A stretch of DNA of 64,000 bases from Lepidodermella squamata (lineage: Eukaryota; Animalia; Gastrotricha). Below the pieces are notes generated by a model. It was not told the DNA's origin. It was given only the letters and a program-made list of their open reading frames with translations, and did no database searches. Position 1 is the first letter of the stretch; each line of letters begins with the position of its first letter. Location of the stretch: positions 1,922,001 to 1,986,000 of the forward strand of contig JBLDXI010000032.1 of assembly GCA_047495785.1 (NCBI GenBank). Direction: 5' to 3'. A program made the translations under genes and the position numbers. This document shows positions 9,701 to 62,794 of the stretch, in pieces.

Positions 9701-11557
9701 CAATGTTCGAATTTGTTTCATTGCGTTTCTATTAAGGAGCTTCGCCAATTGTTACCGGCTGAGTCGGCCGTTGATTTCGATTCCCAGCTTGTTCGAAGCG
9801 TTAAACAGTTGAGTGGCTTGAGTAATACGCTGAAAATTGACGTCCTAATCGTTGGTTGTAAGAAAGATGACCAAATTTCAGGAGATATGATATCTCTGAA
9901 GCAGTTTTCGAGTGATTTGGAGAAAAATCTTGAAAAAACTGGTTTGAAATCGGTAACGATATCAGATCTAGATTCTATTCCTTTCGAGCAAATGGCGGTC
10001 ATGTTGAGGTCTTCTCGCTTGATTTTATTTTGTATCTCGCCGGATTTCATGGTTAACGAGCGCTGCCAGGCGGCGTTATTTTCCGCCCGAGAGACGTATA
10101 AAAAGCCTGTTTTAATCGCCTTTATTCGCGATTTCGATTGGAAAAATAATTCATCCCTAGCTTTTCTTTTGGGCAGTGATGTTTACATACGAGCAATCAA
10201 TAAGGCTAAATACCAGCCCAGCCAGGTTTTAGAAACTGTAAAACTTCGAGTTGAGCAATCGATAGCTCTTGAAATTTCAAACAAATCCGCGGTTGAAAAT
10301 CACCCGCCAGTTTTCATTTCATATTGTTGGCAAAATAGTCGTGATGCCGTTTCGAAGGGCACTCGAGCTAACGCCGGCTCTGTTGGTGCGCTGGACCCAA
10401 GAGATTTGAAAAAATTTCTCGGCGAAAACGGCATTCAATGCTGGCTGGATATTGAACAGGTTAGCCGAGGCGCCGGGGCTCTTTTCGAAAATATCGCTAT
10501 CGGTCTCCGCCAGTGTCGCGTTGTTATAGTTTGCATTTCAGACGAGTATTGTGCCTCTGAAAATTGCCTTCGTGAATTTCGGTTCGCAACCTCTGCATGT
10601 GGCTTACCTATAATCCTCTGCGCAGTGGGAACCGGATGCTTATGGAAACAGTCTGAGGTCACCCTAGTAGCGTCTCTCGCGGCTAGAATAAATTTCCAGA
10701 TTGATTCAAAGGAAAACTACGATGCTCTTCTTGCGGCTGTTAAAGAGCATGTAAAGGTTGAGGAAACGAGTGGGAATAATGAGCTGCAGCAAAAGCAGGC
10801 AACTAGTCCTTTGGAAACGTCGCTATTCTTCTCAGAAATGTTGGAATTGGCCCAGCGTAGATTTTTGCGGCAGCTGATATCCTACGGACCGGGTTCCAGA
10901 CCATACCCGAGACTTCTACTGCTCGACTTGGCTGCAAACGCGAAAATACCTGAGGTTGTCAATAGTGAGAATTTTGAGAAGATCATCAATTCTACGAATT
11001 GGTGCATCAGTTTTCTTTGCGAGAACGAAACCGGTTGGCATATTGTCGAGTCAAAGCTAACGATTGATAACACTTCGACGCCTGTTACTCAGCTATTACG
11101 AGATTCAGCTGCATATCTGAGTCGACTGTTGTATCTTACCCGGTATTGCAATACAGTTTTTCCGCAATTGCTGTCACCGAGCGACGAGAAATTGTCGAAG
11201 TTTTGCGGTGAAGTGGTTGCTTTTCTCGAAAAATTCGTTAAGCTTGAAGAGTCGTTCTCGAGCGAGTTTTTCACCTTGCGGCTTCTTGCGCTGTCACTGG
11301 ATCCAAAAATGACTTGTGGCGGTCTTCATCGCTGTCAACTCGCCGTGGGCAAGGAGCTGTGGCTGTGCCCGGTCCATGTTAAAACCGCTAATTTCAAAGT
11401 TCGTGAAAACGACGATGCAGAAACACCAGAAAACAATGCCGATAATTCAGCGGTGAAAAACGATATCAAGTTAGCAATTGAAGCTGGAGAAATTGAGGAC
11501 AGCGCTGCAAAACCAAGGATCACGGTTCGAACAAGCCGCGCTTGCGTGCTTCAATGA
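3761..11557 (+). CDS. Roco1: kinase-less LRR-ROC-COR-TIR-TIR protein with CaaX (CVLQ), multi-exon
   Basis: In-frame exons 3761-3841, 3899-4102, 4158-8407, 8464-11557 with GT-AG introns. Intron 8408-8463 joins ORFs 4179-8411 and 8447-11557 into GIDFR-IWDFAGQ. Motifs: ROC G1 GLGGAGKT, G2 TDGIDI, G3 WDFAGQ, G4 GTQAD; COR IINPQW; TIR VFISYCW..WLDIEQ..SENCLREF. The start codon is uncertain. Confidence 0.88.
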
Positions 11558-17700: not shown

Positions 17701-19972
17701 TCATCGCCGTATTATTAATGAAATTAGTTTTAAATACCTCCCGACCGGATTGTTCAATCGGGCGCAAGTTCGACTGCAAACCTACTCGGACGTGTCGGTC
17801 ATTTGGCGAAGGGGCAGTTTACTGAAGAAAAGCAGCCATTTAGCGTTAATAACCCAGTTGCAGGCGAATAGCGTGATTAGCATTCAGGTGCAAGGCCCGC
17901 GTCCTGAAAATTTGTCATTTCTCATCCTGGAAGTTTTCAATAGTTTAATTGCAGATAGCTTCAATGGGCTTCAGCATGACGTGTCGTTTTCTTGCCCTGA
18001 GTGCGTAAATTTGCGTATGGCCGAGCCTAGTATGTTTGAAAGTTCTCGAATTCGCCGAGCTATAGAACTGAAAATTCCGTCCCTTCAGTGTTATTCTTAC
18101 TTTCATCTGGTCCCGACACAAGAGCTTCGCTTGTTGGGTCCTAACCTTGAATCATCGGGAGATTTCGATCTGCATTGGGAGAGAACGCTGCATCAATTGA
18201 ATGGCCTATCTCAATCATTGCAAACTGACGTTGTTGTCATGGGCTGTCCATTAGATTCGGACAGTAAGGATTTTGTAAGCGCTGACGTCATAGCCAGAGA
18301 TTTGGGTGCAACCAATAGCTCGCTTTCGATCAAAGCCATCTCAGACGCTTCCGCGATGACTTTCGAGCAGCTAGCAATAATTATTCGAGCCACTCGAGTA
18401 GTAATTTGCTGCATTTCATCATCATTCATGGCAGATACTTCTTGCCAATCCGCCTTAATTTACGGCCATGAGACGTTGCAAAAACCTATGGTTACAGTCT
18501 TGGTGCGGGATATGGACGTGAAACAACACCCTTCCTTAGCGTTCATGATTGGCGATGAGGTGTATATCAAAGCTATTAATCGAACGAAATACAAAATTGA
18601 AGACATTTCTGCTGCAATACAACTCCGCCTTAACAAAAATGATCAGAAATCTCAGAAAAGTCCCCTGGTTTTTCTTTCGTATTGTTGGCAAAACAGTAAA
18701 GAAGCAGTAGAAAAAGGGACGAAGGGCAAATCTGGCTCTTGTGGCGTTACTGACCCTCGAAAATTGAAGCGATTTTTGAGTGATGAAAACGGAATCGAAA
18801 CCTGGCTCGACATTGAGCAGGTCGGGCGTGGTGGTTTATTCGAAGAAATTGCCAACGGTCTTCGGAAATCGAAGCTCGTCATTGTGTGCGTTTCAGATGA
18901 GTATGTCGAGTCGAAAAATTGCCTACGTGAATTTCATTTCGCAACAACGGTTTGCCAGTTGCCGATTGTTATGTGTGTGGTGGGTACCGGTTGCCAGTGG
19001 AAACAGTCGGAAGTGACGTTTGTAGCGGCTCAATCTGCCCATAGCATCAATTTCCAACTAAATTTGCCTGAAAATTACACCCGTTTACTCGAGATTGTCA
19101 AATCGTTTATTCATGTGAAAAAGCCGCCGTTATTAAGGCGGAAATCGGGCATTATTCGGAAATCAGAATCTGAACGAGATGAAGGGGTTTCAACGGAAAG
19201 TGTATCGATCATGTTCGAAGAAATGATTGAGCTTGGCCAATCAAGGTTTCTAAAGCAGATTTCCGAATTTCCCAGCTCTACTAGGTCTAAGCCTTTCCCA
19301 AGACTTGTCATTTTCGATATTGACAAATCGAATGTCCCGAGAGTTAACGAAGAGTCTTTGGTCGAATTTATCAACCGATTACCTTGGTCATGTCGTTTTC
19401 TATGTGAATCCGAATCTGGTTGGCATTCAACAGATGTGAATATGAAATTGAGCGAGAAAAATCAAATCGCCCCCGATTCATTATTGGCCAAAAGCTCGGC
19501 CTATCTTGGCCGCGTTTTCTCCCTAGTGTCCCACGGAACAAGAGAAAAGCCGCGAATTCTCCAAAATTCGACTTATCAACTGATTGCTGAGTATATAAAC
19601 ACCTTTGTAAAACTGGAAGAGTCTTTCGAGAGCGAATATAGATTTCTCATTGATCTCGCAATTTCCTCTGGTCGAGATCACGGCCTATTCCAGTGCCACC
19701 TACCTCTTGGCAGAGACGTGTGGTTGTGCAGGGAACATCGAAATGTGAATCGGGCAACAAATTTGAGTCAAAATATATCTGATACAAGCAACTCATCGCC
19801 TGCAAATATCTCAAATTCGAAGGCTGAAAGAAGCCCATTTATCAATGATGCTGTGATAGCTCGTCAATTCGCTAGTCAGGTTACATCGCCAGATATCGGC
19901 CTTGGCGAAAAAATTGTGCCCAGTGGCCAAGTAAAGGCCGCAAAGACGAGTCGTGCTTGTGCGATACAGTGA
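11741..19972 (+). CDS. Roco2: kinase-less LRR-ROC-COR-TIR-TIR protein with CaaX (CAIQ), multi-exon
   Basis: Several small in-frame exons in 11741-12770 (MRSTVRKKLKVNF...; LRR exon ISFCVKVSDVGITQIGYGFPNLEK), then intron 12771-12827 and a 7.1-kb terminal exon containing ORF 12842-19972. Motifs: GLGGAGKTS, WDFAGQ, GTHAD, IINPQW, VFLSYCW, SKNCLREF. Confidence 0.9.
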
Positions 19973-20203: not shown

Positions 20204-23200
20204 ATGAGCAAGGGCCCTCCGAAAGCCCCCATCACAGGGTCAAATGCTGTAAGACGGACCATCGTCATGCGTCCCAAGGCTCGGCCTAATGAAAGCGAAG
20301 CGGAACGTCAGGAGCAAGGTAGGGTAAGATTAATGGGAACTAATCGAACTTGATTTCTCTATTCTTTATAGAGAGGATTGCAAACGAAAATGCTGAAGCA
20401 TTTGGCCGATTGGCTGAAATGGAGAAGCACTTTGATAAGAAAAGCCCAGAACCTGAACAGAAGACTGCCGGCAATAAAGATGACTTTCTAAGCGAGATAA
20501 GGCAGGGTGTCCGACTGCGGTCTGTTAATGAACCGCGGAAAGGTAAAATTGTCAACTTGATTCTAAATTTCAACCGAAAGGATTTTTTCTATCAGCTGTA
20601 AAGGCTGTTGATGTAACCGCTGCGATCAACGCCAATCCGAACGGGTTCGGTAGTGCTGCTGCTTATTCCGTTTGTTTATTTTCCTGGAGAATAAAGAAAT
20701 GCTTAATTTTGAAATTGTAGTCGGTATTTAAAACCGGCAAAGGCGAAGAAGTTGGTTCAATAAACTTCTGCGGCACGGTCAGATTGGTGGACACTCACTT
20801 CTACTACTGGCCTGACTTCAAAACAGTTACCACCCTAAATGTCTCGTACTGCCCTAATATCACTAATTTTGGCATACGGTTGATTAAAGACGCATTTCCC
20901 AAGCTAAAAAAGGTAATTTGATGACAATTAAAGTGGGTTTTTTTAAATTCTGATGAATTTTAGTTGGACGCTTCCGGATGTCGATTAGTTACCGAATCAG
21001 TCGTCGAAACTATTTCTGACCCTGCATTCACTGCGATTTTCAACTGGACTGGTATTCGTTACATCCCTCATAAAACACGGTTCCTGAGGTTGGAAACGAA
21101 GGGATGTCCGTTAATTATCAAGAAAGAAACCAGTGATCTCATTGCCAATTCACCTGATGGTATAATTTGTTGTTATCGTAAATTTGTATCTGAAGTTTCG
21201 TTTAGGAACTATCAAACAGAAGTCTCTAGGAGAAAAATCTGCGGCGGCTTCTGAGTTTACCCAACTGACAGCCATGTTAAGTGAATATTCTTTCGCTAAA
21301 ATTGTTGTCATCAAACCCGAGTCGCATGCAGCTAAATCAATCGCCATTGGCTGGCTGAAACCCGACGGCCCGGTGGAAGGTGTCTCACAGTGCGCCATTT
21401 CTTATCGCTCAGGGCCTTATCGTGTTATTGAATGTGATTTTCATGCGCCTCTTTCGCTTTTCCTTACAAACAATTGCATTGTGGTGATACCTTTTGACAA
21501 TGATTCGGCATCAGCTGTTTTGCAATCGGTCGAGAGTCGTTTGTCGTTCATTTCCTCGATTTTGACTGACTTTCAGGCCATAGCCGTTCCCGTTTCGCTC
21601 GAGAGTCCGGTTGAATTCGACGAAAGCGCCCTTTCCAGTGTGAAAATTGAGCAGGCTAAGGCATCTCTGCAAGGCACCACAGTGGAGGAATCTGAAAAGG
21701 AGAAACGGAAGCCCGAGGAAAATCCCAAGGCTGCTAGGCGTTATTACTATTTATCGAACCATTTAACGTTTTTGCCGAGTTTTGAATCAGCTAATGCTTG
21801 GTTGGTTGCGAAGAAGTCTTATTTAAACATTCCGCCTACAATTTTTCCATTGTTGGAATATTTGACAAAATCAAATATTTTCGATATGACTGAAAAACTA
21901 TTCATCACCTCGGAGGACTTGGGTTCAATCCTCCCTCAATCGCTGCTTGAAAGTTTGGCTGAGAAGTCAATAATGCCTAACTGGGCATCATTCGCGTCAG
22001 TTTTAGCTGAAACCGGAAATATTTGGAGTGAATACTCAAGCAGCCATGATGACCCAAATCTGAATAATTCGTTTTCCTACTTGACAAGTACGTCGAATTT
22101 GATGAAAATTGTCAAAATACTCACTACCACCGATGACATGGAAAGTAGCATAGAGAATGTGAAATGCCTTCCCCCAGGTACCAAGCTGTGTAGAATCGAT
22201 GCGATAGCCCATTTGTTAACTGGCGTTGCCGCGTCTGATAAAATTCGCTTGTTTTCTGAATTCGAACGCAGCGGAATCGGAATCTTCAATTTGAAGCAAA
22301 ACCTGGCATTATCAGCTGTTAACCTAGCTACCAGTCCCGCTATCTCTGACGGACATTTTTCGAGTAGTTCTGAGCTCAATCTGAACTCGGAGCATTATGA
22401 CATTGCTTGCCACCCAGATTTGGTCATTCACAATCTGTTATCTCGCTTATGCAAGGTGTTCAAACCCGTTTTGATTTGGAAGCACGGTGCGGTCTTTGAT
22501 GAATGCTCCTCCTTGATAATTAAAGTCAGGTCGAACCTTCCTGCGCCGAGCCATAACCAATATTCGGTTTTTGTCTCGATGTCGAGTGATATTCGTGGCT
22601 TTGGCGATTATCAAGTTCAGCGGCGCGAGTTGATTCAAGCGACCTGTGGGGTGGTCGCACAAATTTGTACCGCTGTCTTAGCGCCTTATTCTATCAATGA
22701 TTCGTACAAAAATCCTCCGAATTCGTATTTTCACCCATTGCTCCAGTTCGATCCCAAAACTGCAGTTATCCGAACTTTCTCGCGAGATTTTGATATGTCG
22801 CTACCTCGTTGCGCCCGTTGCTTATTGACCGCTGATATCATCGGTCTGCTGAGACAAGCGAATTGGCGATACACTGCTAATAGCTTCAACATGATCGGAA
22901 AGGCCAGCGAAGAGTTCGAGATTCCGATTCCAATCGACCTAACTGTACCGTCCAATTTCATTGAGATCTTAACCAATTCAGGATTCGAATTTTGCCGATT
23001 TCATGTCAGCAATGAACTAGGTCAGTGCGACGGTAATACCAGTATAAAAATGTACTTCAAAGAGAAACATATTTGCGCGATCGAAGAGCAAGAAATGATT
23101 CACGAGACTAGCGGCCACGGCAAGTTCAGTAAAACCAAACAATCTGCGGCGATCAATATCGAAAATCTGTATCCTGTCGTTCGATTCGATGCTCGTTTGA

Positions 23201-26200
23201 TTGATAGCAGAGTTGAAATAGTGGTGGCATTCAACGGCCGCGCTCTTATGACATCAATTATTAAGGTGGCTGATACAAATTTGTTATCGCATTTGATTAT
23301 GACAGTTAAGCCTGACTCGCATCAGAATCCTTTCTACTCATATGGGGCGAGGAAGTGGGACAGGCCACCACTCGCTAGCAAAGCCGAGTTATTCGCCGAT
23401 ATTAAGGTGGATATGATAGTGGAAATTATAATGCCGAATGGGGTGATACGCCCCGCTCTTGTATTCGATTACGACGAGAACAATGCTACAGTTGAAATGT
23501 CAGTACGGCTATCACACAGCAGATTTGTCATTGAAAAGCGTGATATGAATTCTCCGAATTTGTTGCCAGTCGGGTTTTGTAAGTACTTGATGTCAGACGA
23601 CTTAATTTTCAGCCGTTTCCGAACTTTAGTTTTAGAAAAGCTTAACGTTGAGCTCAGCGATAAGCTTGAAGACCCCTGGGACAATGATCTACATATTTAT
23701 ATGTTCAAGGCAAAGAAACTAGTGAAAGGCACAATGGTACAGTACCACTATAGTGACGATGTAAATGAACGGGAAAGAGAGCTAGCCGAAATAAGAAATG
23801 AGGCGGATGACCCTAAAAAAGTGTTAAAATACGATGGCGAGCGTTATCGTATTTTCGAAAGTGAAAGCATCTTTGATAACCCCATATCCTACCCGTTCAG
23901 CCTATTTGACCGCTCGCTATTGGTCGGATTTTCGCCTCTAGTCGTTTCTCAGCTGAAGAATCCATGCCCAGTAGCCCTATCGCGAAAATTGGCTAAAGCT
24001 CGAAGCGAACTTGACAGAACCACTCTGGACGCCGAATTGCAAAATTTCATCAGATTGAATGTTTTGACTCTGCCGCTTCGTCAATTGTTTGAGGTGCACA
24101 ACTGTTTATTTCCGTCGTTTTCACTCGTTTATCGCGATGATTCGTCGCCACTAACATCCCACGTGCTGTGTGGAGCTTCAATGATTCATTTTACAAATGA
24201 AATGTTGCCTCCATTTGGGGACATCAACACAAATTCAGTTATTCCACGAATAATAATCGCCGTTATTCTTCGAATGATTGACCAGCCTCACTTTATTCCA
24301 CCAAATGTTGAGAACATATTTCCGAATTTGAAAACCGACTCTTTTGCGAAGAAAGATATAGTCTCACCTAGAGTCTTCTTGGAGAGGACGTTTCGCGAGA
24401 CGGTTTTTCCGTTCCTATTAGATTTTTACCTATCTCATGTGAATGTGAAAAATGATTGGAAAAAAGTTGTCCTTCTGAATGACAGCTACGAACTGCACAT
24501 CAAGGAGAAGGATGACGGTAAAAATTGCCACATTGTGTTCGCGAAGTGGCTTGCATCCGAGTACGACCTCTACAACTCAAACACCGAATGTCCCTTGGTG
24601 ATGTGTGCAAAACATGCTTACATCAATTCTGAGTATGACAGACGGAAACGTACTCAACTGCTCGATGAAATGCATGAAAAACTAGAGCCAACACTTGATA
24701 TGATAGGGTCGAATTACGACGATTTTATCACCTGTCGCGCTTTGAAAGCCGATCCTGCCAAACTGGATTCAGTCGCACCCACTCTGTCCCCTTATCTACG
24801 GGGTTTTTATGTTACAAGCTGGAATGTGTTTCAACTAGAGCGATTGCATTTGAGGCAAGTACCTAAGTTCATCTTCTCATTTCGTCACTTGACCGAGCTC
24901 TTGTTGTGTTACAACAAATTGGAAGATTTACCTGACGAATTAGCCGCCTTGAAACCTACTCTTCATCTGTTGGACGTGTCTCATAATACTTTCACTGAAT
25001 TGCCAAAAGTTGTCTATCAACTCACTGAATTACGGTCTTTGAGAGCTGACTATTTGAATATTTCGCAGGTTGATGACAATTTAAGCGAGCTTAAATTTCT
25101 CCAACTGCTTTCTCTACGCTCGAATTGTCTGACAAATTTTCCGGCAGTGATCTCTAAACTGGAGTATCTTGAAGTGCTTGATCTATCAGGAACGCCCCTG
25201 TTTCCATCAAATGTTCGCTATATGGAAGACATTTACAGTTATACTTATAAATGGAACATGCGTAACGAATTCTTCCTAAAGGATATTTCAAACTACTTTG
25301 CGAATATTCCGTTCTCCAATACTGGAGTAATTGACGTCGAACCTTTCAATGCATATATCTTTGATAGCATACCCAGAATGAAGTTTGAAAAGGGTTTCCC
25401 GGCGGAAATATTCAGCTTGACCAGACTGAAAGAGTTGAGTCTCGCCTATCAACACGTTACCGACATACCTGATGAAGTAGGTCAATGCAATTTGTTGGCC
25501 AGATTTGATTTGATGGGCTGTTTAGCTCTAAAAAGAATTACACCGTCAATAGCTCAGGTTCCGCTGAAAATGCTAAATCTATCGAATTGCCCCATGCTGC
25601 AAACCCCGCCCGCAGAAATTCGTAAACGCGGTTTTGCGGCGACAACCGCGTATTTTCGCCGGCTTTCAATGGGCTCTACCAATGTCCAGCGGACTAAATT
25701 GATGTTCGTCGGGTTGGGCGGGGCGGGCAAAACCAGTCTAGTCAGTGCGTTAATTAACCAAAACGGGAAAATGACCCGCCCAAACGGGAGAGACACCGTT
25801 GTAACCGATGGAATCGATATCACCGATTGGGAATTAGACGCTGGAAACCGGTCGAAGGTTCAGTTCAAAATGTGGGATTTTGCGGGCCAGGTTGTTTACT
25901 ACAACACGCATCAGTTTTTCCTGTCGAATCGAGCCGTTTACCTGATTATGTGGAACATTCGATTGGGCCACGAACATGCCGGTATCGATTTTTGGCTGAG
26001 TTCGATCGCAGTTCATGCCCCACTGGCTTCGGTTATCGTTGTTGGAACTCATGCTGACCAAGTCCCAGAGGAGCGCTCGTTTCTACCCGAGGCGAGTTAC
26101 CGCGATCGTTTCTCTAATGTTTGTGGTTTCCATTACGTGAGTAGCCATACCGGTAAAGGAATCGCAGAACTTCGCGAGCATATTCGCCAGGTGGCGTTGA

Positions 26201-29028
26201 AGCAAAAGCACATGGGCGAAGCGATTCCCCAGGGTTGGCTTACTTTGGAGACAGATTTGACGTCGAAACGGAAAAACAAAAAAGACGAAGCCAACGAGTC
26301 TTCCATCTTAATGATTGATGAAGTGATGGAATTAGCAGATTCTGTCGGAATTTATGATGAGGACGAATTAGACCAGGCCTTGCAATTCTTCACAGATTTA
26401 GGGTCTATCCAGTATTTTAAAACGGACTTTTTACGCGATCGTGTCATCATCAACCCGCAATGGATCGTTGACGTTTTAGCTTGTCTGGTTTCGATCAACG
26501 ATAGTCCGATAGTTGATGGTAAGATGTATCATAAAGACCTGGCAAAAATATGGCAAAAATACCCGCTTTCACTCCATCCGTGGCTTCTTAAGTTAACTGA
26601 AGCGTTCGATTTGACTTACCCTCTTACAAATGAACCTGCATCTATCGTGGCGTGTATGTTGCCTGAAAACGCGCCGCCTGACCTAGCGTGGCCTGATTTG
26701 GAGGAAAACCCAGATTGGCGGCAAACTGAGCTAATTTTATCGTTTAAATACCTGCCAACTGGCCTTTTCAACCGTGCCCAGGTACGCATTTGCCAACTCT
26801 CAGACGCTAAAATGTGGCGGAAGGGTAGCATGCTGGTCAAAAACAAGCATATCGCTTTAATTGCTCAACCGGACGCTTCAACTGTCCACGTGAAGGTCAT
26901 TGGGCCGCGGCCGGATAACATCTCATTTTTGATACTCGAAGTGTTCGATAATTTGATAAACGAATCATTCAACGGCCTTCATTGCGAGTACAAGTTCGCA
27001 TGCCCAGAGTGCGTTAATGCAAGGGCTAGCCAAGTGTCCATGTTTGAAAGGTCGCGAATAAGACGCGCGACTGAACTTCACATTCCAACTATCCAATGCT
27101 TTCACTATTTCCATCAAATCCCGACCAGAGAATTGAGGCAGATGCTACCAGCTGAAAATGTCGGCGATTTCGACTATCAGCTGAGTCGAACTGTTCAGCA
27201 GTTATCAGGGATAAAGAATTCAGTCGCGAATGATGTTTTAATCATCGGTAGTTCTGCCGATAACACCGAAAATTCGCATGAATTTGTTGGAATCGACGAA
27301 ATAGCGAAAAATCTTTGTGAAAATTTGCCGGATTTGAAAATCAACTCAATTAATAACCCGGATTCGATGCAATTCGAGCAAATCAGTTTGTTGATTCGCT
27401 CATCGCGGGTTGTCGTCTGTTGCCTTTCTCCTAATTTTCTCCTCAGTGAACATTGCCAAGCAGCCCTTTTGAGTGCAAGAGAAACTCTGAGGAAGCCTCT
27501 TGTCATCGTTTTACTCCGAGATTTGGACATTCAAGCCAGCGATGCGTTAGCTTTCACAATCGGCGACCAGGTCTACGTTAAAGCCATTAATAGAGGCCGA
27601 TATAAGCCGCTTGATGTGGCTGAAATTGTCAAAATGCGGCTGAGGGAGGCGGAGCGGGTTTCATCGGCCGGTCGGGCCCGTCATCCGCCTATTTTCATCT
27701 CCTATTGCTGGCTTAATAGCAAAGACGCGATTGAACGAGGCTCGAAAGCGAAAGAAGGATCTGTTGGCGTAACAGACCCAAGGTACCTGAAACGTTATCT
27801 GGTCGAAAAGGGCTATGAATGTTGGATTGATATTGAACAGGTCGGTCGGAATGGGTTGTTTGAGGACATTGCGGTCGGCCTGCGTCATGCTCGTTGCGTG
27901 ATTGTTTGCGTCTCTGACGAGTACGTCGAGTCGAAAAATTGCTTACGTGAGTTTCGTTTTGCAACCTCAGCGTGTACTGTCCCGATTATTCTATGCGTTG
28001 TTGGCACTGGAATCGCCTGGAAGCAGTCCGAGGTTAACCTGGTTTTACCTCCCACAGCTCCTGTCATCCATTTTCAGTTCGATTCACCTGCTAATTACGA
28101 TAAGTTAGTCTCAGCTGTTGAGCAAATTCTGGGCAAAAAAGTGGATGAGGCTAAACAACCAGCTAACTTAGCTAGTCTAGGCCGAAATAAAACGATGGAG
28201 GAGATTAAAATGTCCCATGCGGACCAGGCTATTTCCAGCCGAGAAACCTTCACGGATGTTTACCGAGAAATTCGCGAGCTTGAACAGCGACGATTTCTGC
28301 GTCAAATCGCCTCGTTTTCCGAACAAACAACGTGCCCTCGGCTAGTTGTAATTGATGTCGACGAAACTAGCTCGCCTGTTCATAGCGAAGCTGATCCGTC
28401 ATTAGCATCGAAAATTTTCCGTTTTAGTAAGCTTTCATGGTGTTTGAAGTTTCTGTGTGAAAACGAGGATGGTTGGCATTATACCGATAATTCGTTGCCT
28501 ATCGACGCTGATAAGGTGGATGATTTGATTTCGAGGAGTGCGCCGTATTTGGGCCGAGTTTTTTCACTGATGAAACACTCCGATAACCCTCCGCGGCTCA
28601 TGTCAGCCAAGGACCCGGCATTGAGTGAGGTATACGAAACCGCACTGCAAGAAATCGAGAAAATGAAAAAGTTCGAGGAAAGTTTCGAGGCGGATTATCA
28701 TCACTTGGTTCAATTCGCTGTTAAAGTCAATGATCAAGCTACTCTTGGCGGCTTGCGGCTTTGTCAGTTAGCTGTTGGAAAAGAACTTTGGCTTTGCAGC
28801 GAGCATTCAGAAGCGATGAAATCGAAGCTGAAAGGGGTTTCGAGTGATGTTAAGCGCCGGAATAAGAATGCGGACGCGATGACCGGTATCGGCATGGGCG
28901 ACAGCTTCACTGTGAAACATCAGCCGATCAAAGTAGATGCACCCGGTAGACCATTTTCTTCATTGTCGACCAGTGGCAGAGCGCAGTCAGCTAAAGCAAA
29001 AACTAGTCGAGCATGTATTTTGCAATAA
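20204..29028 (+). CDS. Roco3: WH2-LRR-pseudoROC/COR-MBT-like-LRR-ROC-COR-TIR-TIR protein with CaaX (CILQ)
   Basis: ATG 20204 (MSKGPPKAP..) is followed by five short in-frame introns, the last at 21160-21205, and a 7.8-kb terminal exon (ORF 21184-29028) with intact ROC G1-G4 motifs, COR and two TIRs. AATAAA at 29091-29096. Confidence 0.9.
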
Positions 29029-38900: not shown

Positions 38901-41900
38901 GGTGTTCAGACCCATTTCGATTTGGAAGCATGGGGCTGTATTCGATGAATGCTCCTCCTTAATAATTAAAGTCAGCTCGAATCTTTCTGGCCCAAGTCGC
39001 AAACAGTATTCGGTTTTTGTCTCGATGGCAAGTGATTCTCCTGACTTTGGGGACAAGGATAATCAAGCTCAACGGCGCGACGTCATTCAAGCATCGTGTG
39101 GGGTTGTCGCACAAATTTGCACCGCTGTTCTAGCGCCTTTCTCCATCAACGATTTGTACAAAAATCCTCCGAATTCGTATTTTCACCCATTGCTCCAGTT
39201 CGATCCCAAAACTGCAGTTATCCGAACTTTCTCGCGAGATTTTGATATGTCGCTACCTCGTTGCGCCCGTTGCTCATTGACCGCTGATATCATCGGTCTG
39301 CTGAGACAAGCGAATTGGCGATACACTGCAAATAGCTTCAACATGATCGGAAAGGCCAGTGAAGAGTTCGAGATTCCGATTACACTTGACCTGACTGTGC
39401 CGTCAAATTTCATTGAGATCTTAACGAATTCAGAATTCGAATTTTGCCGATTTTACGTCAGCAATGAAGTTGGTCAGTGTGACAGTAATACTAGCATAAA
39501 AATGTACTTCAAAGAGAGGAATATTTGCGTAATCGAAGAGGAAGAAATTGTCCACGAATCAAACGGCCACGGTACATTCAGTACGTGCAAGCAATCCGCG
39601 ATGATCAATATCGCAAATCTGTATCCTGTCGTTCGATTCGATGCTCGATTGGTAGATAACAGCGTTGAAATTGCAGTGGCAGTTAACGGCCGCGTAGTGT
39701 TGAAATCTATCGTTAAGGTGGCTGATATCAACTTATTATCGCATTTGATTATGACAGTTAAGCCTGACTCGCATCAGAACCCATTCTACTCATATGTGGC
39801 GAGGAAGTGGGATAGACCACCGCTTGCTAGCAAAGCCGAGCTATTCGCCGATATTAAGGTGGATATGATATTGGAAATTATTATGCCGAGTGGAGTGATT
39901 TGTCCGGCTCTTGTAATCAATTACGATGAGAGCAATGCTACAGTCGAGATGTCAGTACGGTTGTCGGACGTTGAAATTGTCATCGAAACGCGTGAAATAA
40001 AATCTCCGACTTTGTTGCCTGTCGGGTTTTGTAAGTACCTACTGTCAGACGACGTAATTCTCAATCGATTCCGAACGTTGTTCCTGGAAAGGTTTAGCGT
40101 AGAGCTCAGCGATAAGCTCGAAGACCCTTGGGACAATGATGAGCCAAGTCTCTATTTATTCAAGGTAAAAAACATAGGGAAAGGCCCCTCAAGTAAAGAG
40201 GAAGCCGAAATGAGGAAAGATGCGGCGGATGCTAAAAAAGTTATAAAATACAATGCCGGGCGTTACCGTGTTTTCTATACAAGTAGCAAATTCGATAACC
40301 CCGTGCGATACCCTTTCAGCCGATTTGACAGTTCGCTGTTGGTCGGATTTTCGCCTGCTGTTGCTTCACAGCTAAAGAACCCATGCCCAGTAGTCCTACC
40401 GCGAAAGCTGGCAAAAGCTCGACGTGAACTTGACAGGCCTACTCTCGACAACGAATTGCAAACATTTATCAGAGCGAATGTTTTGACTCTGCCGCTTTGT
40501 CAGTCGTTTAGCGTGCAGGACTGCTTTTTTCCTTCGTTTTCACTCGTTCATGGTAAAGAGGAGGCGCCATTGACAAACCACGTGTTGTGTGGAGCATCTC
40601 TGATTCATTTCACAAATGAAACTTTGCCTCAATCCGTAATTACCAAGGGTGCATTTATGCCCCGAACATTCATCGCCACCATTCTTCGAATGATTGACCA
40701 GCCTCATTTCATTCCAGCGAATTTTGAGAACATATTCCCCAATGTGAACACGGACTCTTTTGCGAAGAAATATGTAGTTTCTCCAAGAGTTTTCTTGGAG
40801 ACAACCTTCCGCGAGACGGTTTTTCCGTTTCTATTAGATTTTTACTTATCTCATGCGGATGCTAAACAAAATTGGAAGAAGGCCACTCTGTTGACTGAAA
40901 GCTACGAAATTCACCTCAAGGATAAGGGTGAAGTTAACAATTGTCAGATTGTTTTCGCGAAGTGGCTTGCATCCGAGTACAATCTCTACAACTTAAACAG
41001 CGAATGTCCCTTGGTGATGTGTGCAAAACATGCTTACGTCAATTCTGAGTATGACAGGCGAAAACGAACTCAACTCCGCGATAAAATCCATGATAAACTA
41101 GCGCCAACACTCGATATGATCGGGTCGAATTACGACGATTTTATTACCTGTCAGGCTTTGGTTGATGCCAAACAGATCCGTTCCGATTCAGTTGTGGCAA
41201 CTAACTCACCTTATATTCGACATTTGCACGTTGGAAACTGGGATTTGCCGGAAGTGCTGCCGTTTATTCTCTCATTTCGTCATTTGACCGAGCTCCTGTT
41301 GTGTTACAACCGCTTGAATGATTTGCCTGACGACTTGGCCGCCTTGAAACCAACTCTTCATCTGTTGGACGTGTCTCAAAATGCTTTCACTGAATTGCCA
41401 AAAGTTGTCTATCAACTCACGGAATTGCGGTCCTTGAGGGCTGACTATTTGAATATTTCACATGTCGATGACAATTTAAGCGAGCTTAAATTTCTTCAAC
41501 TACTTTCTCTACGATCGAATTGTCTGACAACTTTTCCGGCAGTGATCTCTAAACTGAAGCATCTTGAAGTGATTGATCTATCAGGAACGCCCCTGTTTCC
41601 TTCGTATGCTAGCCATGCGGACTACATCTACGGTTATGTTAGAAAATGGAACATGACTATTCTATTCTCTCATATTTCATCCTACATCCAGGCGAACAGG
41701 GCGGATAAAGGGCGGCGAACAGGAAGATATTGATGTCGAATCATTCAATGCATATATCTTTGATAGCATACCTAGAATGAAGTTTGAAAAGGGCTTCCCG
41801 GCGGAAATATTCGGCCTGACCAGACTGAAAGAGTTGAGTCTCGCCTATCAGCATGTAACCGACATACCCGATGAGGTAGGTCAATGCAAATTCTTGGCAA

Positions 41901-44900
41901 AATTCGATTTAATGGGCTGTTTGGCTCTAAAAAGAATTTCGCCTTTAATAGCTAAGACCCCGGTGGAGATGTTGAATCTTTCTAATTGCCCCTTGCTGCA
42001 AACCCCCCCTGCGGAAATTCGAAAACGCGGTTTGGCTGCAACAACCGCGTATTTTCGTAGGCTTTCAATGGGCTCTACTAATGTCCAGCGAACAAAACTG
42101 ATGTTCGTTGGATTGGGCGGGGCGGGCAAAACAAGTCTAGTGAGTGCGTTGATCAATCAAAACGGAAAAACAGCCCGCCCGAACGGGAAAGACACCGTTG
42201 TAACCGATGGCATCGATATCACTGATTGGGAACTGGACGCGGGAAACGGGTCGAAGGTTCAGTTCAAAATGTGGGATTTTGCGGGCCAGGTTGTTTACTA
42301 CAATACGCATCAGTTTTTTCTGTCAAATCGCGCTGTTTACCTGATTATGTGGAACATTCGATTAGGCCACGAACATGCAGGTATCGATTTTTGGCTGAGT
42401 TCGATTGCAGTTCATGCCCCACTGGCTTCGGTTATCGTTGTTGGAACTCATGCTGACCAAGTCCCAGAGGAGCGGTCGTTTCTACCAGAGACGAGTTACC
42501 GCGATCGTTTCTCTAATGTTTGTGGTTTCCATTACGTAAGTAGCCATACCGGTAGGGGAATCGCAGAACTTCGCGAGCATATTCGTCAGGTGGCGTTGAA
42601 GCAAAAGTACATGGGCGAAGCGATTCCCCAGGGTTGGCTTACTTTGGAGACGAATTTGACGTCAAAAAATGGAAAACGGAAAAACAAAAAAGAAGACCTG
42701 ACCGACTCGTCCATCCTAATGTTGGATGAGGTGATTGAAATAGCAGATTCTGTCGGAATTTACGAGGAGGACGAATTAGACCAGGCCTTGCAATTCTTCA
42801 CTGATTTAGGGTCTATCCAGTATTTTAAGTCGGATTTTTTACGCGACCGTGTCATCATCAACCCGCAATGGATCGTTGACGTTTTAGCTTGTTTAGTTTC
42901 GATCAACGACAGCCCGATAGTTGATGGGAAAATGTCCCATAAAGACCTGGCAAAATTATGGGAAAAATACCCGATTTCGCTTCATCCATGGCTCCTGAAG
43001 TTAACTGAGGCGTTCGATTTGACTTACCCTCTTAAAAATGAACCTGCATCTATCGTGGCGTGTATGTTGCCAGAAAACGCGCCACCCGACCTAGCGTGGC
43101 CTGATTTGGAGGAAAACCCAGATTGGCGGCAAACTGAGCTAATTTTATCGTTTAAATACCTGCCAACTGGACTATTCAACCGCGCCCAGGTACGCATTTG
43201 CCAGCTTTCGGACGCTAAAATGTGGCGAAAGGGTAGTATGCTGGTCAAAAACAAACATAGCGCTTTAATTTCACAACCAGACGCTTCGACTGTCCATGTG
43301 AAGGTCATTGGGCCGCGGCCGGATAACATCTCATTTTTGATACTCGAAGTTTTCGATAATTTGATAAACGAGTCGTTCAACGGCCTTCATTGCGAGTACA
43401 AGTTCGCATGCCCAGAGTGCGTTAATGCAAGGGCTAGCCAAGTGTCCATGTTTGAAAGGTTGCGAATAAGACGCGCGACGGAACTTCACATTCCAACTAT
43501 GCAATGTTTCCATAATTTCCACCAAATCCCGACCAGAGAATTAAGGCAGATGCTGCCGGCTGAAACTGTCGGCGATTTCGACTATCAGCTAAGTCGAACT
43601 GTTCAGCAGTTGTCAGGGATAAAGAATTCAGTCGCGAATGATGTTTTAATCATCGGTACATTTGCCGATAACACCGAAAATTCGCATGAATTTGTTGGAA
43701 TCGACGAAATAGCGAAAAATCTTTGTGAAAATTTGCCGGATTTGAAAATCAACTCAATTAATAACCCAGATTCGATGCAATTTGAGCAAATCAGTTTGTT
43801 GATTCGTTCATCGCGGGTTGTCGTCTGTTGCCTTTCTCCTAATTTTCTACTCAGTGAACATTGCCAAGCAGCTCTTTTGAGTGCAAGAGAAACTCTGAGG
43901 AAGCCTCTGGTCATCGTTTTAATCCGAGATTTGGACATTCAAGCCAGCGATGCGTTAGCTTTCACAATCGGCGATCAGGTCTACATTAAAGCCATTAATA
44001 GAGGCCGATATAAGTCGTTGGATGTGGCCGAAACGGTCAAAATGCGGCTGAGGGAGGCGGAGCGGGTTTCATCGGCCGGTCGAGCCCGTCATCCGCCGAT
44101 TTTCATCTCCTATTGCTGGCTCAATAGCAAAGACGCAATTGAACGAGGCTCGAAAGCGAAAGAAGGATCAGTTGGCGTGACAGACCCTAGGTACCTGAAA
44201 CGTTATCTAGTCGAAAAGGGCTATGAATGCTGGATTGATATCGAACAGGTCGGTCGGAATGGGTTGTTTGAGGACATTGCGGTCGGCCTGCGTCATGCTC
44301 GTTGCGTGATTGTTTGCGTCTCTGACGAGTACGTCGAGTCGAAAAATTGCTTACGTGAGTTCCGTTTTGCAACCTCCGCGTGTACTGTTCCAATTATTCT
44401 ATGCATTGTTGGCACCGGAATTGACTGGAAGCAGTCCGAGGTATACCTGGTTTTACCTCCTACAGCCCCTGTCATAAATTTCCAGGTCGATTCACCTGCT
44501 AATTACGATAAGCTGGTTTCAGCTATCGAGAAAAGTTTCGGCAAAAAAGACGAGGAAACTAAACAAACAGCCAATTTAGCTAGCATTGGCCGAATGAAAA
44601 CGATAGAGGAGATTAAAATGTCCCATGCGAACCAGGCTATTTCTAGCCAAGAAATGTCCACGGATGTTTACCGAGAAATTCGTGAGCTTGAACAGCGGCG
44701 ATTTCTGCGTCAAATCGCCTCGTTTTCCGAACAAACAACGTGCCCTCGGCTTGTTGTAATTGATGTCGACGAAAACAGCCCGCCTAATACCGAAAGTGAT
44801 TCGACATCCGAGTCTAAAATTTTCCGTTTCAGTAAACTTTCGTGGTGTTTGAAGTTTCTGTGTGAAAACGAGGATGGTTGGCATTATGCCGATAATTTGT

Positions 44901-45433
44901 TGCCTATCGACGCTGATAAGGTGGATGATTTGATTTCGAGGAGTGCGCCGTATTTAGGCCGAGTTTTTTCGCTAATGAAACACTCCGATAACCCTCCGCG
45001 GCTCATGTCAGCCAAAGACCCGGCATTGAGTGAGGTATACGAAACAGCCCTGCAAGAAATCGAGAAAATGATCAAGTTCGAGGAAAGTTTTGAGGCAGAT
45101 TATCGTCACTTAGTTCAAATCGCTATTGAACTCGATAGTGAAACTTCTTTTGGCGGCTTACGGCTTTGTCAGTTAGCTGTTGGTAAAGAACTTTGGCTTT
45201 GTCGCGAGCATTCAGAAGCGATAAAATCGAAGCTGAAAGGGGTTTCGAGTGATGTTAAGCGCCGGAATAAGAATGCGGACGCGATGACCGGCATCGGCAT
45301 AGGCGACAGCTTCACTGTGAAACATCAGCCCATCAAAGTAGATGCTCCCGGTAGACCATTTTCTTCAATATCGACCAGTGGCAGAGCGCAGTCAGCTAAA
45401 TTAAAAACTAGTCGAGCATGTATTTTGCAATAA
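35954..45433 (+). pseudogene. Roco4: paralog of Roco3/5 with a +1 frameshift in the LRR island (possible pseudogene or assembly error); ends CILQ
   Basis: Same exon structure as Roco3 from ATG 35954. ORF 37597-41733 (frame 1) and ORF 41777-45433 (frame 2) are collinear with Roco3/5. The break sits at a micro-duplicated GGCGAACAGG (41691-41700, 41714-41723). Confidence 0.8.
36941..37619. mobile_element. MITE (~680 bp) inside the Roco4 intron 36928-37654
   Basis: ~60-bp imperfect TIRs (acgtatgcggcat..ttatttcggcgaatctttc / gaaagattcgccgtaataag..atgctgcatacgt). The homologous intron is only 46-47 nt in Roco3 (21160-21205) and Roco5 (54943-54989). Confidence 0.8.
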
Positions 45434-59900: not shown

Positions 59901-62794
59901 GTAGCCATACCGGTAAAGGAATCGCAGAACTTCGCGAGCATATTCGCCAGGTGGCGTTGAAACAAAAGCACATGGGCGAAGCTATTCCGCAGGGTTGGCT
60001 CACTTTCGAGACGAATTTGACGTCAAAAAATGGAAAACGGAAAAACAAAAAAGAAGACCTGACCGACTCGTCCATCCTAATGTTGGATGAGGTGATTGAA
60101 ATAGCAGATTCTGTCGGAATTTATGAGGAGGACGAATTAGACCAGGCCTTGCAATTCTTCACAGATTTAGGGTCTATCCAGTATTTCAAGTCGGATTTTT
60201 TACGCGACCGTGTCATCATCAACCCGCAATGGATCGTTGACGTTTTAGCTTGTTTGGTTTCGATCAACGATAGTCCGATAGTTGATGGGAAAATGTTCCA
60301 TAAAGACCTGGCAAAATTATGGGAAAAATACCCGATTTCGCTTCATCCATGGCTCCTGAAGTTAACTGAGGCGTTCGATCTGACTTACCCTCTGAAAAAC
60401 GAGCCAGCGTCCATCGTTGCGTGTATGTTGCCAGAAAACGCGCCACCCGACTTAGCGTGGCCTGATTTGGAGGAAAACCCTGATTGGCGTCAAGCTGAGC
60501 TAATTTTATCTTTCAAATATCTACCGACTGGACTATTCAACCGTGCCCAGGTACGCATTTGCCAGCTTTCGGACGCTAAAATGTGGCGAAAGGGTAGTAT
60601 GCTGGTCAAAAACAAGCATAGCGCTTTAATTTCGCAACCAAACGCTTCGACTGTCCACGTGAAGGTCATTGGGCCGCGGCCGGATAACATCTCATTTTTG
60701 ATACTCGAAATTTTCGATAATTTGATAAACGAATCGTTCAACGGCCTACATTGCGAGTACAAGTTCGCATGTCCTGAGTGCATTAATGCAAGGGCGAGCC
60801 ATGTTTCGATGTTTGAAAGGTCGAGAATAAGACGCGCGGCTGAGCTTCACATTCCAACTATGCAATGCTTTCACTATTTCCATCAAATCCCGACCAGAGA
60901 ATTGAGGCAGATGCTACCAGCTGAAAATGTCGGCGATTTCGACTATCAGCTGAGTCGAACTGTTCAACAGTTGTCAGGGATAAAGAATTCAGTCGCGAAT
61001 GATGTTTTAATCATCGGTACATTTGCCGATAACACCGAAAATTCGCATGAATTTGTTGGAATCGACGAAATAGCGAAAAATCTTTGTGAAAATTTGCCGG
61101 ATTTGAAAATCAACTCAATTAATAACCCGGATTCGATGCAATTCGAGCAAATCAGTTTGTTGATTCGTTCATCGCGGGTTGTCGTTTGTTGCCTTTCTCC
61201 TAATTTTCTCCTCAGTGAACATTGCCAGGCAGCTCTTTTGAGTGCAAGAGAAACTCTGAGGAAGCCTCTGGTCATCGTTTTAATCCGAGATTTGGACATT
61301 CAAGCCAGCGATGCGTTAGCTTTCACCATCGGCGATCAGGTCTACGTTAAAGCCATTAATAGAGGCAGATATAAGCCGTTAGATGTGGCTGAAACGGTCG
61401 AAATGCGGCTGAGGGAGTCGGAGCGGGTGACCTCGGCCGGTCGAGCCCGTCATCCGCCTATTTTCATCTCCTATTGCTGGCTTAATAGCAAAGACGCAAT
61501 TGAACGAGGCTCGAAAGCGAAAGAAGGATCAGTTGGCGTGACAGACCCTAGGTACCTGAAACGTTATCTAGTCGAAAAGGGCTATGAATGCTGGATTGAT
61601 ATCGAACAGGTCGGTCGAAACGGGTTGTTTGAGGACATTGCGGTCGGCCTACGTCACGCTCGTTGCGTGATTGTTTGCGTCTCTGACGAGTATGTCGAGT
61701 CGAAAAATTGCTTACGTGAGTTCCGTTTTGCAACCTCGGCGTGTACTGTCCCGATTATTCTATGCATTGTTGGCACTGGAATTGCCTGGAAGCAGTCCGA
61801 GGTTAACCTGGTTTTACCTCCCACGGCCCCTGTCATAAATTTTCAGGTTGATTCACCTGCTAATTACGATAAGCTGGTTTCAGCTGTCGGGCAGATTCTG
61901 GGCAAAAAGGTGGATGAGGCTAAACAACCAGCTGATTTAGCAAGTCTAGGCCGAAATAAAACGATGGAGGAGATTAAAATGTCCCATGCGGACCAGGCTA
62001 TTTCAAGCCAAGAAACCTTCACGGATGTTTACCGTGAAATTCGTGAGCTTGAACAGCGGCGATTTCTGCGTCAAATCGCCTCGTTTTCCGAACAAACAAC
62101 GTGCCCTCGGCTAGTTGTAATTGATGTCGACGAAAACAGCCCGCCTAATACCGAAAGTGATTCGACATCCGAGTCTAAAATTTTACGTTTCAGTAAACTT
62201 TCGTGGTGTTTGAAGTTTCTGTGTGAAAACGAGGATGGTTGGCATTATACCGATAATTCGTTGCCTATCGACTCTGATAAGGTGGATGATTTGATTTCGA
62301 GGAGTGCGCCGTATTTAGGCCGAGTTTTTTCGCTAATGAAACACTCCGATAACCCTCCGCGGCTCATGTCAGCCAAAGACCCGGCATTGAGTGAGGTATA
62401 CGAAACCGCCCTGCAAGAAATCGAGAAAATGATCAAGTTCGAGGAAAGTTTTGAGGCAGATTATCATTACTTAGTTCAATTCGCTATTGAACTCGATAGT
62501 GAAACTTCTTTTGGCGGCTTGCGGCTTTGTCAGTTAGCTGTTGGAAAAGAACTTTGGCTTTGCAGCGAGCATTCAGAAGCGATTAAATCGAAGCTGAAAG
62601 GAGTTTCGAGTGATTTCAAGGGCCGGGATAAGAAAATGGACGCGATGACCGGCATCGGCATAGGCGACAACTTCACTGTGAAACATCAGCCGATCAAAGT
62701 AGATGCGCCCGGTAGACCGTTTTCTTCAATGTCGACCAGTGGCAGAGCGCATTCAGCTAAAGCAAAAACTAGTCGAGCATGCAGTCTACAATAG
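53959..62794 (+). CDS. Roco5: paralog of Roco3 (degenerate WH2-LRR-pseudoROC/COR-MBT-like-LRR-ROC-COR-TIR-TIR) with CaaX (CSLQ)
   Basis: ATG 53959 (MSKGPPKPP..), same five introns as Roco3 (last at 54943-54989), terminal exon in ORF 54962-62794 with intact GLGGAGKTS, WDFAGQ, GTHAD and SKNCLREF. Confidence 0.9.

Follow-up and report, generated by a model that had tools for sequence, protein, structure and literature searches.

In the plant TIR heterodimer RPS4/RRS1 (PDB 4c6t), the RPS4 domain carries the catalytic glutamate whereas the RRS1 domain does not, and RRS1 restrains RPS4. In Cat1 (PDB 9mud), a bacterial, CARF-regulated CRISPR-associated NADase (an enzyme acting on nicotinamide adenine dinucleotide, NAD+), the active site comes from two TIR domains: it is lined by S7, H8, N9, N10, D33, S68 and E74 of one TIR and by K121 and Y122 of the neighbouring TIR, and toxicity is lost in all of the mutants N10A, D33A, S68A, E74A, K121A and Y122A (PMC12162218). 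Drosophila Raw requires both of the TIRs carried on its chain, and these have been proposed to form a single pocket (PMC13455253). Here we analyse a pair of TIR domains, TIR1 and TIR2, fused in one chain and encoded on a 64-kb stretch of DNA (the window) of the gastrotrich Lepidodermella squamata (contig JBLDXI010000032.1, 1,922,001-1,986,000, of an assembly of 121 Mb in 151 contigs). The product is a ROCO protein that carries both TIRs at its C-terminal end, and sequence comparison gives good support, at residue level, for TIR2 as a catalytic-type and TIR1 as a degenerate TIR. RPS4/RRS1 likewise joins a Glu-less to a Glu-bearing TIR, but as separate proteins; Raw hydrolyses cyclic ADP-ribose (cADPR) rather than NAD+ and belongs to another TIR family, and in both cases homology to TIR1-TIR2 is limited to the fold. 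Cat1 is the best sequence-profile match of TIR2 among solved TIRs, but it forms filaments of identical TIRs and not a fused dead/live pair. The SARM1 TIR (E642) shares with TIR2 the fold, the F-I-S-Y, I-D-[IV]-E and G-x-F-E-D motifs (compared by eye) and a Glu on helix alphaC, whereas identity is 19 %, TIR2 has Asn where SARM1 has Trp four residues before the Glu, and SARM1 is regulated by ARM/SAM and not by a ROCO GTPase.

The LRR-Roc-COR-TIR architecture is not new, being that of an already catalogued invertebrate family found in molluscs and probably placozoans. A survey of the Aplysia immunome described LRR-ROC-COR-TIR genes, one of which also encodes an MBT repeat, as 'TLR-like' proteins of an unusual kind (PMC9334734). 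For Trichoplax, Kamm et al. 2019 report two 3000-aa LRR+TIR proteins, classed ecTIR-DC 14 II by Gerdol et al. 2017, and they describe the ecTIR-DC 14 family as widespread in invertebrates and absent from vertebrates (PMC6321704). The family treated here is probably the ecTIR-DC 14 of Gerdol et al. 2017, an equation that runs via Kamm et al. 2019. A word-index search with the TIR pair returned full-length homologues with the same Pfam set, namely a 2328-aa protein at 58 % and bivalve proteins at 32-36 %, the latter from Pecten, Argopecten, Mizuhopecten, Crassostrea and Potamilus (2788-3825 aa, E 1e-43 to 1e-54 over the TIR pair); a search of the same type with TIR2 alone yielded no more than four short fragments and did not connect it to any named active TIR. 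Common to the family are the domain order (with or without MBT), a Glu-less TIR1 followed by a Glu-bearing TIR2, the C-terminal domain and a CaaX end. The gastrotrich locus differs in having eight tandem paralogues, nearly intron-free, in one 100-kb cluster, and what it adds is additional paralogues of a catalogued family without known function. Which animal TIR domains besides SARM1 are enzymes is an active question, and this family, present in several invertebrate phyla, joins a TIR of catalytic appearance to a GTPase switch of the ROCO kind, a machine of the LRRK2 type, rather than to a STAND ATPase.

Catalytic-site positions in the two TIR domains

The third of five gene copies in the window (copy 3) served as reference. 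Its product has Pfam matches to LRR (residues 1226-1480), Roc (1505-1625), COR-A (1682-1826) and COR-B (1847-1984), then to two TIR_2 stretches. The scores for PF08477 (Roc, 66.8 bits), PF16095 (COR-A, 93.2 bits) and PF25497 (COR-B, 80.9 bits), in that order and with Roc directly before COR, place it among the ROCO proteins.

21184..29028, + strand: copy 3 ROCO-TIR-TIR gene, a 2614-aa uninterrupted open reading frame (ORF) with LRR, Roc, COR-A, COR-B, TIR1, TIR2, C-terminal domain and CaaX
27226..27654, + strand: TIR1, residues ~2015-2157, a divergent TIR fold without F-x-S-Y box, with Ala2094 (codon 27463-27465) at the catalytic-Glu position
27682..28125, + strand: TIR2, residues ~2167-2314, catalytic-type, with S2173-Y2174 (betaA), D2216 (betaB/BB loop), and S2250 and E2256 (alphaC; Glu codon 27949-27951)

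Residues are numbered below within the 341-aa TIR-TIR segment, where A105 is A2094 and E267 is E2256 of the protein. An AlphaFold2 model of this segment, built on a 14-sequence alignment (predicted local distance difference test, pLDDT, 79; predicted template modelling score, pTM, 0.53), consists of two flavodoxin-like alpha/beta units with the same order of elements (TIR1: betaA 27-32, betaC 85-92, alphaC 100-112; TIR2: betaA 181-185, betaC 249-254, alphaC 262-274). The two model folds, at 27226-28125, coincide with the interval 27230-28120 to which an earlier note on this DNA had assigned a pseudo-TIR and a catalytic-type TIR, and all motifs quoted in that note are present in the alignment. 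In the window copies, TIR2 reads F-[IL]-S-Y-C-W, W-[IL]-D-I-E-Q (W-x-D-[IV]-E in the family as a whole) and S-[KE]-N-C-L-R-E-F. TIR1 reads S-E-H-C-Q-A-A-L, T-S-C-Q-S-A-L or E-R-C-Q-A-A-L and is without the F-I-S-Y box, in place of which it has D-V-L-I-I-G (D-[VI]-L-[IV]-I-G or similar across homologues). The Glu codon of TIR2 (GAG or GAA) and the Ala codon of TIR1 (GCN) are each kept in five of the five copies.

That the Glu stands at the catalytic position, as the earlier note had proposed, is supported by several comparisons. In the model, E267 (protein E2256) sits on helix alphaC. When a profile of eleven TIR2 sequences was run against all PDB sequences, the best genuine match was Cat1 (E 3.6e-5), with D227, S261 and E267 aligned to D33, S68 and E74; RecA-fusion chains that topped this search were rejected as summed noise from repeated fusions, their single stretches all having E > 30. 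The model domains were also compared by VIA-align with 48,161 PDB representatives. TIR2 (177-330) matched IL-1RAcPb (Z 15.9), Hydra TRR-2 (14.9), MyD88 (14.4) and SARM1 (14.0), and further RPS4/RRS1 (4c6t, Z 13.3), oyster TIR-STING, RPP1 and ThsB, solved TIRs ranging from Z 12 to 16. On SARM1 9hq0 (Z 14.0, root-mean-square deviation (rmsd) 2.8 Å, 128 residues), model 178-324 lies on chain 561-700, and the range ends (178 on 561, 324 on 700) are compatible with E267 at E642, within one residue. Conservation was assessed in 14 sequences (the eight paralogues and six homologues, down to ~30 % identity): S184, Y185, D227, S261 and E267 of TIR2 are invariant in all 14, and the TIR1 residue matching the TIR2 Glu is A, A, A, A, A, A, A, T, A, I, I, I, M and I, non-acidic throughout. 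By these equivalences, what TIR2 keeps of a TIR NADase pocket is its cis half, made up of betaA S-Y, betaB Asp and alphaC Ser and Glu, the betaA S-Y being equated with the pocket by motif position only. Placing Cat1 K121/Y122 on the V-Y-[VI]-K strand of TIR1 was tried as well and remains a lead, the ranges fitting only to within ±2-3 residues and the motif not being kept in oyster or unionid homologues. Two other searches were set aside, a Foldseek run of the two-domain model against the PDB, which gave mainly unrelated double-Rossmann proteins (template modelling score below 0.4, rmsd above 9 Å), and a phmmer run of TIR2 alone against the PDB, of which the top match, an amino-acid transporter, was spurious.

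An independent structural alignment marks the same Glu in two orthologues. Hurieva et al. 2026 (bioRxiv 10.64898/2026.04.20.719644) aligned ~16,000 eukaryotic TIR models on ThsB and list as catalytic residue 2052 in their #136 (Rotaria sp. Silwood1, 2825 aa) and 1833 in #137 (Dimorphilus gyrociliatus, 2178 aa). Counted along the printed construct, Dimorphilus residue 1833 is the Glu of N-C-Q-M-E-F, the same position as the Glu of N-C-L-R-E-F in TIR2, and by eye, over short motifs only, the motifs of both proteins follow those of TIR2 one by one in the same order (F-I-S-Y-C-W, D-P-R, C-W-x-D-I, V-S-D-E-Y, N-C-x-x-E-F).

The identity of TIR1 is less obvious from single scores. Against the Pfam families considered (PF13676/PF01582), TIR2 alone (residues 2161-2330) reaches 46.7 bits for TIR_2 (E 5.4e-12) and TIR1 alone (residues 1990-2160) 28.0 bits (E 3.3e-6), which equals the Pfam cut-off of 28 bits. 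The TIR1 profile found no match among PDB sequences. In the fold comparison, TIR1 (25-168) matched the MAL TIR (Z 13.2), C. elegans TIR-1 (13.2) and SARM1 (12.2), then Cat1, PdTIR and AbTIR; its top four matches are TIRs, and receiver-domain (REC) and GTPase folds follow close behind at Z 11-12.5. One could therefore suppose that TIR1 is a generic flavodoxin-like spacer, REC- or GTPase-like, and that there is no pseudo-enzyme pairing at all, since its Pfam score sits at the threshold, the rival folds score nearly as well as the best TIR, and its profile is without a sequence match in the PDB. The comparison by hhalign of 14 TIR1 with 14 TIR2 sequences speaks strongly against such a spacer and removes the ambiguity of the fold matches (probability 98.6 %, E 1e-15, 124 columns, all secondary-structure elements in register and Ala105 paired with Glu267), as does the fact that the four best structural matches are all TIRs; Hurieva et al. 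likewise class the counterpart of TIR1 as a TIR in Capitella and Dimorphilus. We consider the spacer close to refuted and its chances very slight, and on profile evidence TIR1 is a true TIR homologue.

TIR1 is also maintained by purifying selection and is not decaying. Among the three recent copies, the ratio of nonsynonymous to synonymous rates (dN/dS) is 0.12-0.22 for TIR1 and 0.04-0.08 for TIR2, values based on few substitutions, and between old paralogues, where synonymous change has reached saturation (dS), dN comes to 0.5-0.65 in TIR1 and 0.28-0.40 in TIR2. The earlier description of TIR1 as a pseudo-TIR stands accordingly: it is a TIR, with a non-acidic residue in all 14 sequences, and it is kept by selection. 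In Table S3 of Hurieva et al. 2026, the Capitella domains R7TDS1_1 and R7TDS1_2 have Met and Glu, respectively, and the second Dimorphilus TIR has Leu; in Trichoplax B3S268, both TIRs have Glu. Since both Trichoplax TIRs have Glu and a loss of the TIR1 type is seen in Capitella and Dimorphilus, the loss looks old and possibly post-placozoan, the orthology of B3S268 being presumed. On the sequences compared, TIR1 thus looks like an ancient duplicate from which the catalytic residues had gone before the spiralian phyla split.

Possible activity of the tandem and possible roles of TIR1

On the folds, homology, residue equivalences, conservation and purifying selection established here, we infer an enzymatic activity, its product and a role for TIR1 as follows. 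The segment would be the output module of a lipid-anchored ROCO switch protein, a member of an old invertebrate family, in which TIR2 is catalytically competent in the right assembly, a reading that we regard as evenly poised between true and false. The LRRs would sense a ligand and Roc-COR would assemble or dimerise in a GTP-dependent way, bringing the TIR modules together; in an asymmetric pair of TIRs, TIR1 would be permanently coupled to TIR2 without being catalytic itself, and would help to open or complete the TIR2 site; and TIR2 would cleave NAD+, yielding a cADPR-type signal or NAD+ depletion. A composite pocket of two TIRs is conceivable because the Cat1 site is completed by a neighbouring TIR and Raw offers a precedent for a two-TIR pocket.

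Several observations weigh against this reading. TIR2 is highly conserved throughout, so that an invariant Glu is by itself not specific; the nearest solved folds of TIR2 are mostly non-enzymatic adaptors, effectively level with SARM1; and with a pTM of 0.53 for the tandem model, the relative geometry of TIR1 and TIR2 is uncertain. A further objection comes from Hurieva et al. 2026, who expressed 150-odd TIR domains in E. coli and in whose Table S4 nothing is entered for #136 and #137 under 'Active', cADPR isomer or NAD+ depletion. The suggestion in the earlier note that TIR2 is an NADase has therefore stood only in part: the pocket residues are kept as far as the sequence can tell, but the isolated Rotaria and Dimorphilus orthologues gave neither cADPR isomer nor NAD+ depletion in E. 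coli. This negative result is real but weak because #136 and #137 were assayed as isolated domains of 146-147 aa, the TIR1 tandem not being part of that work, and because the same table also leaves the known plant enzymes RPP1 and RUN1 (and RPS4) blank. The screen recorded activity for animal TIRs whose alphaC motif closely resembles that of TIR2, namely those of Adineta (S-K-S-C-Q-Q-E-F), Latimeria (S-R-N-C-K-K-E-L), Clupea and Magallana, so that it is not disqualifying for TIR2 to have Asn, four residues ahead of the Glu, where Trp is canonical. The legend to Figure 3 of the same work shows at least one Roc-COR architecture among the cADPR producers.

It could also be that both TIRs are pure protein-interaction modules, that the ROCO protein nucleates a TIR signalosome through MyD88-like or other TIR adaptors, and that the Glu is structural or serves binding. 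The top structural neighbours of TIR2 are indeed adaptor or receptor TIRs, its best single-sequence TIR match in the PDB is MyD88, the orthologous TIR2 domains showed no activity in isolation, partners might be supplied by the TIR stretches of the genome, which number at least 66, and the Aplysia survey treats such proteins as TLR-like or MyD88-like. However, MyD88 has Gln at the position of the TIR2 Glu, and three proven Cat1 site residues together with the betaA S-Y are invariant in TIR2 and all relaxed in TIR1; as the silence of RPP1, RUN1 and RPS4 also takes much of the force from the negative screen, we hold a purely adaptor role to be possible but rather doubtful. Alternatively, TIR2 may be the enzyme and TIR1 chiefly a brake, as RRS1 is, in a heterodimer that is inactive until the Roc-COR switch releases TIR2. 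TIR1 is without any catalytic residue and yet under purifying selection, and the RPS4/RRS1 heterodimer is among the structural matches, which would both suit a brake, but a purely inhibitory TIR1 would leave isolated TIR2 active and the two orthologues tested were not, so that this option seems to us quite improbable.

The reading of TIR2 as competent within the right assembly can be taken further, in that the fused TIR1-TIR2 might be a hard-wired, asymmetric and self-contained enzyme unit, gated by the Roc GTPase at the membrane, with TIR1 giving the trans half of the site or an activating surface. Such a unit would explain why isolated TIR2 orthologues are inactive; in this specific form we think it unlikely. 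If true, it would be the first animal TIR enzyme under the control of a GTPase switch. The most useful idea to emerge is that TIR2 activity may depend on TIR1 or on assembly of the receptor, and the dead/live tandem could show how asymmetric TIR pairs are built.

The gene cluster and the C-terminal extension

The window holds five long ORFs or ORF pairs on one strand, and the 341-aa TIR-TIR segment of copy 3 has five tblastn matches in it, with identities of 100, 96, 94, 50 and 51 %, which bears out the presence of the tandem in all five copies as first noted.

27151-28173, + strand: TIR1-TIR2 tblastn match of copy 3, the query copy (100 %)
60920..61942, + strand: TIR1-TIR2 of copy 5, 96 % to copy 3; Ala codon 61232-61234, Glu codon 61718-61720
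43559..44581, + strand: TIR1-TIR2 of copy 4, 94 % to copy 3; Ala codon 43871-43873, Glu codon 44357-44359
18146..19120, + strand: TIR1-TIR2 of copy 2, 50 % to copy 3; Ala codon 18452-18454, Glu codon 18929-18931
9758..10747, + strand: TIR1-TIR2 of copy 1, 51 % to copy 3; Ala codon 10073-10075, Glu codon 10574-10576

Given these identities, the five copies are three recent duplicates and two old paralogues. A whole-genome search added three further ROCO-TIR-TIR paralogues (44-48 %) upstream on the same contig, at 1885843-1908301, 14-36 kb before the window, making eight genes within ~100 kb, and found no further close copies of the TIR-TIR segment elsewhere in the genome. Around the TIR pair, the open frames of two of the three upstream paralogues are shorter, at 712 and 1027 aa, a sign of introns or breaks.

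The protein continues beyond TIR2 for another 295 aa, and conservation of this extension reaches to the bivalves. The model shows it as a helix of 40 residues and an alpha/beta domain (pLDDT 80-90), with a tail that is disordered. Neither Pfam nor the folds of the PDB (best Z 2.7) gave a match to the extension, and its neighbours in the ESM-Atlas are only unnamed, rotifer-dominated clusters; judged from the model, its alpha/beta domain may be a new domain. All five window genes end in T-S-R-A-C-x-[LI]-Q followed by the stop, a CaaX-type box.

28141..29025, + strand: C-terminal extension after TIR2, with long helix, alpha/beta domain, disordered tail and C-a-a-Q prenylation box at 29014-29025
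29014-29025, 11546-11557, 19961-19972, 45422-45433 and 62783-62794, + strand: CaaX-type boxes (sequence motif)

In 10 sequences, bivalves included, the C-terminal domain is conserved and the Cys of the CaaX box invariant. Because this prenylation box is conserved, the TIR pair is probably held at the membrane, the TIR end of the protein being anchored there by the predicted prenylation.

As to the integrity of the genes, the ORFs of copies 2, 3 and 5 run without interruption. Copy 1 has a single GT..AG intron of ~51 nt (~8406-8456) in Roc, just ahead of the D-x-x-G motif, where the other copies are continuous. In copy 4, the reading frame changes within the LRR linker, at ~41690-41730, next to a short sequence that is directly repeated (G-G-C-G-A-A-C-A-G-G, twice); several GT..AG introns would be arithmetically possible as the cause but none is convincing, and copy 4 may have become a pseudogene recently or may reflect an error in the assembly. 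Its identity to copies 3 and 5 is ~72-78 % upstream of the frame change and ~92 % downstream, and against copy 3 it steps from ~72 % to ~92 % at ~41,729 (41600-41900 compared with 25200-25500), which suggests that a boundary of gene conversion or recombination lies within the gene.

Across the 121-Mb genome, at least 66 stretches match TIR_2, many of them locally clustered (for example on contigs C19, C33, C6 and C20), a TIR repertoire that is large for a small invertebrate.

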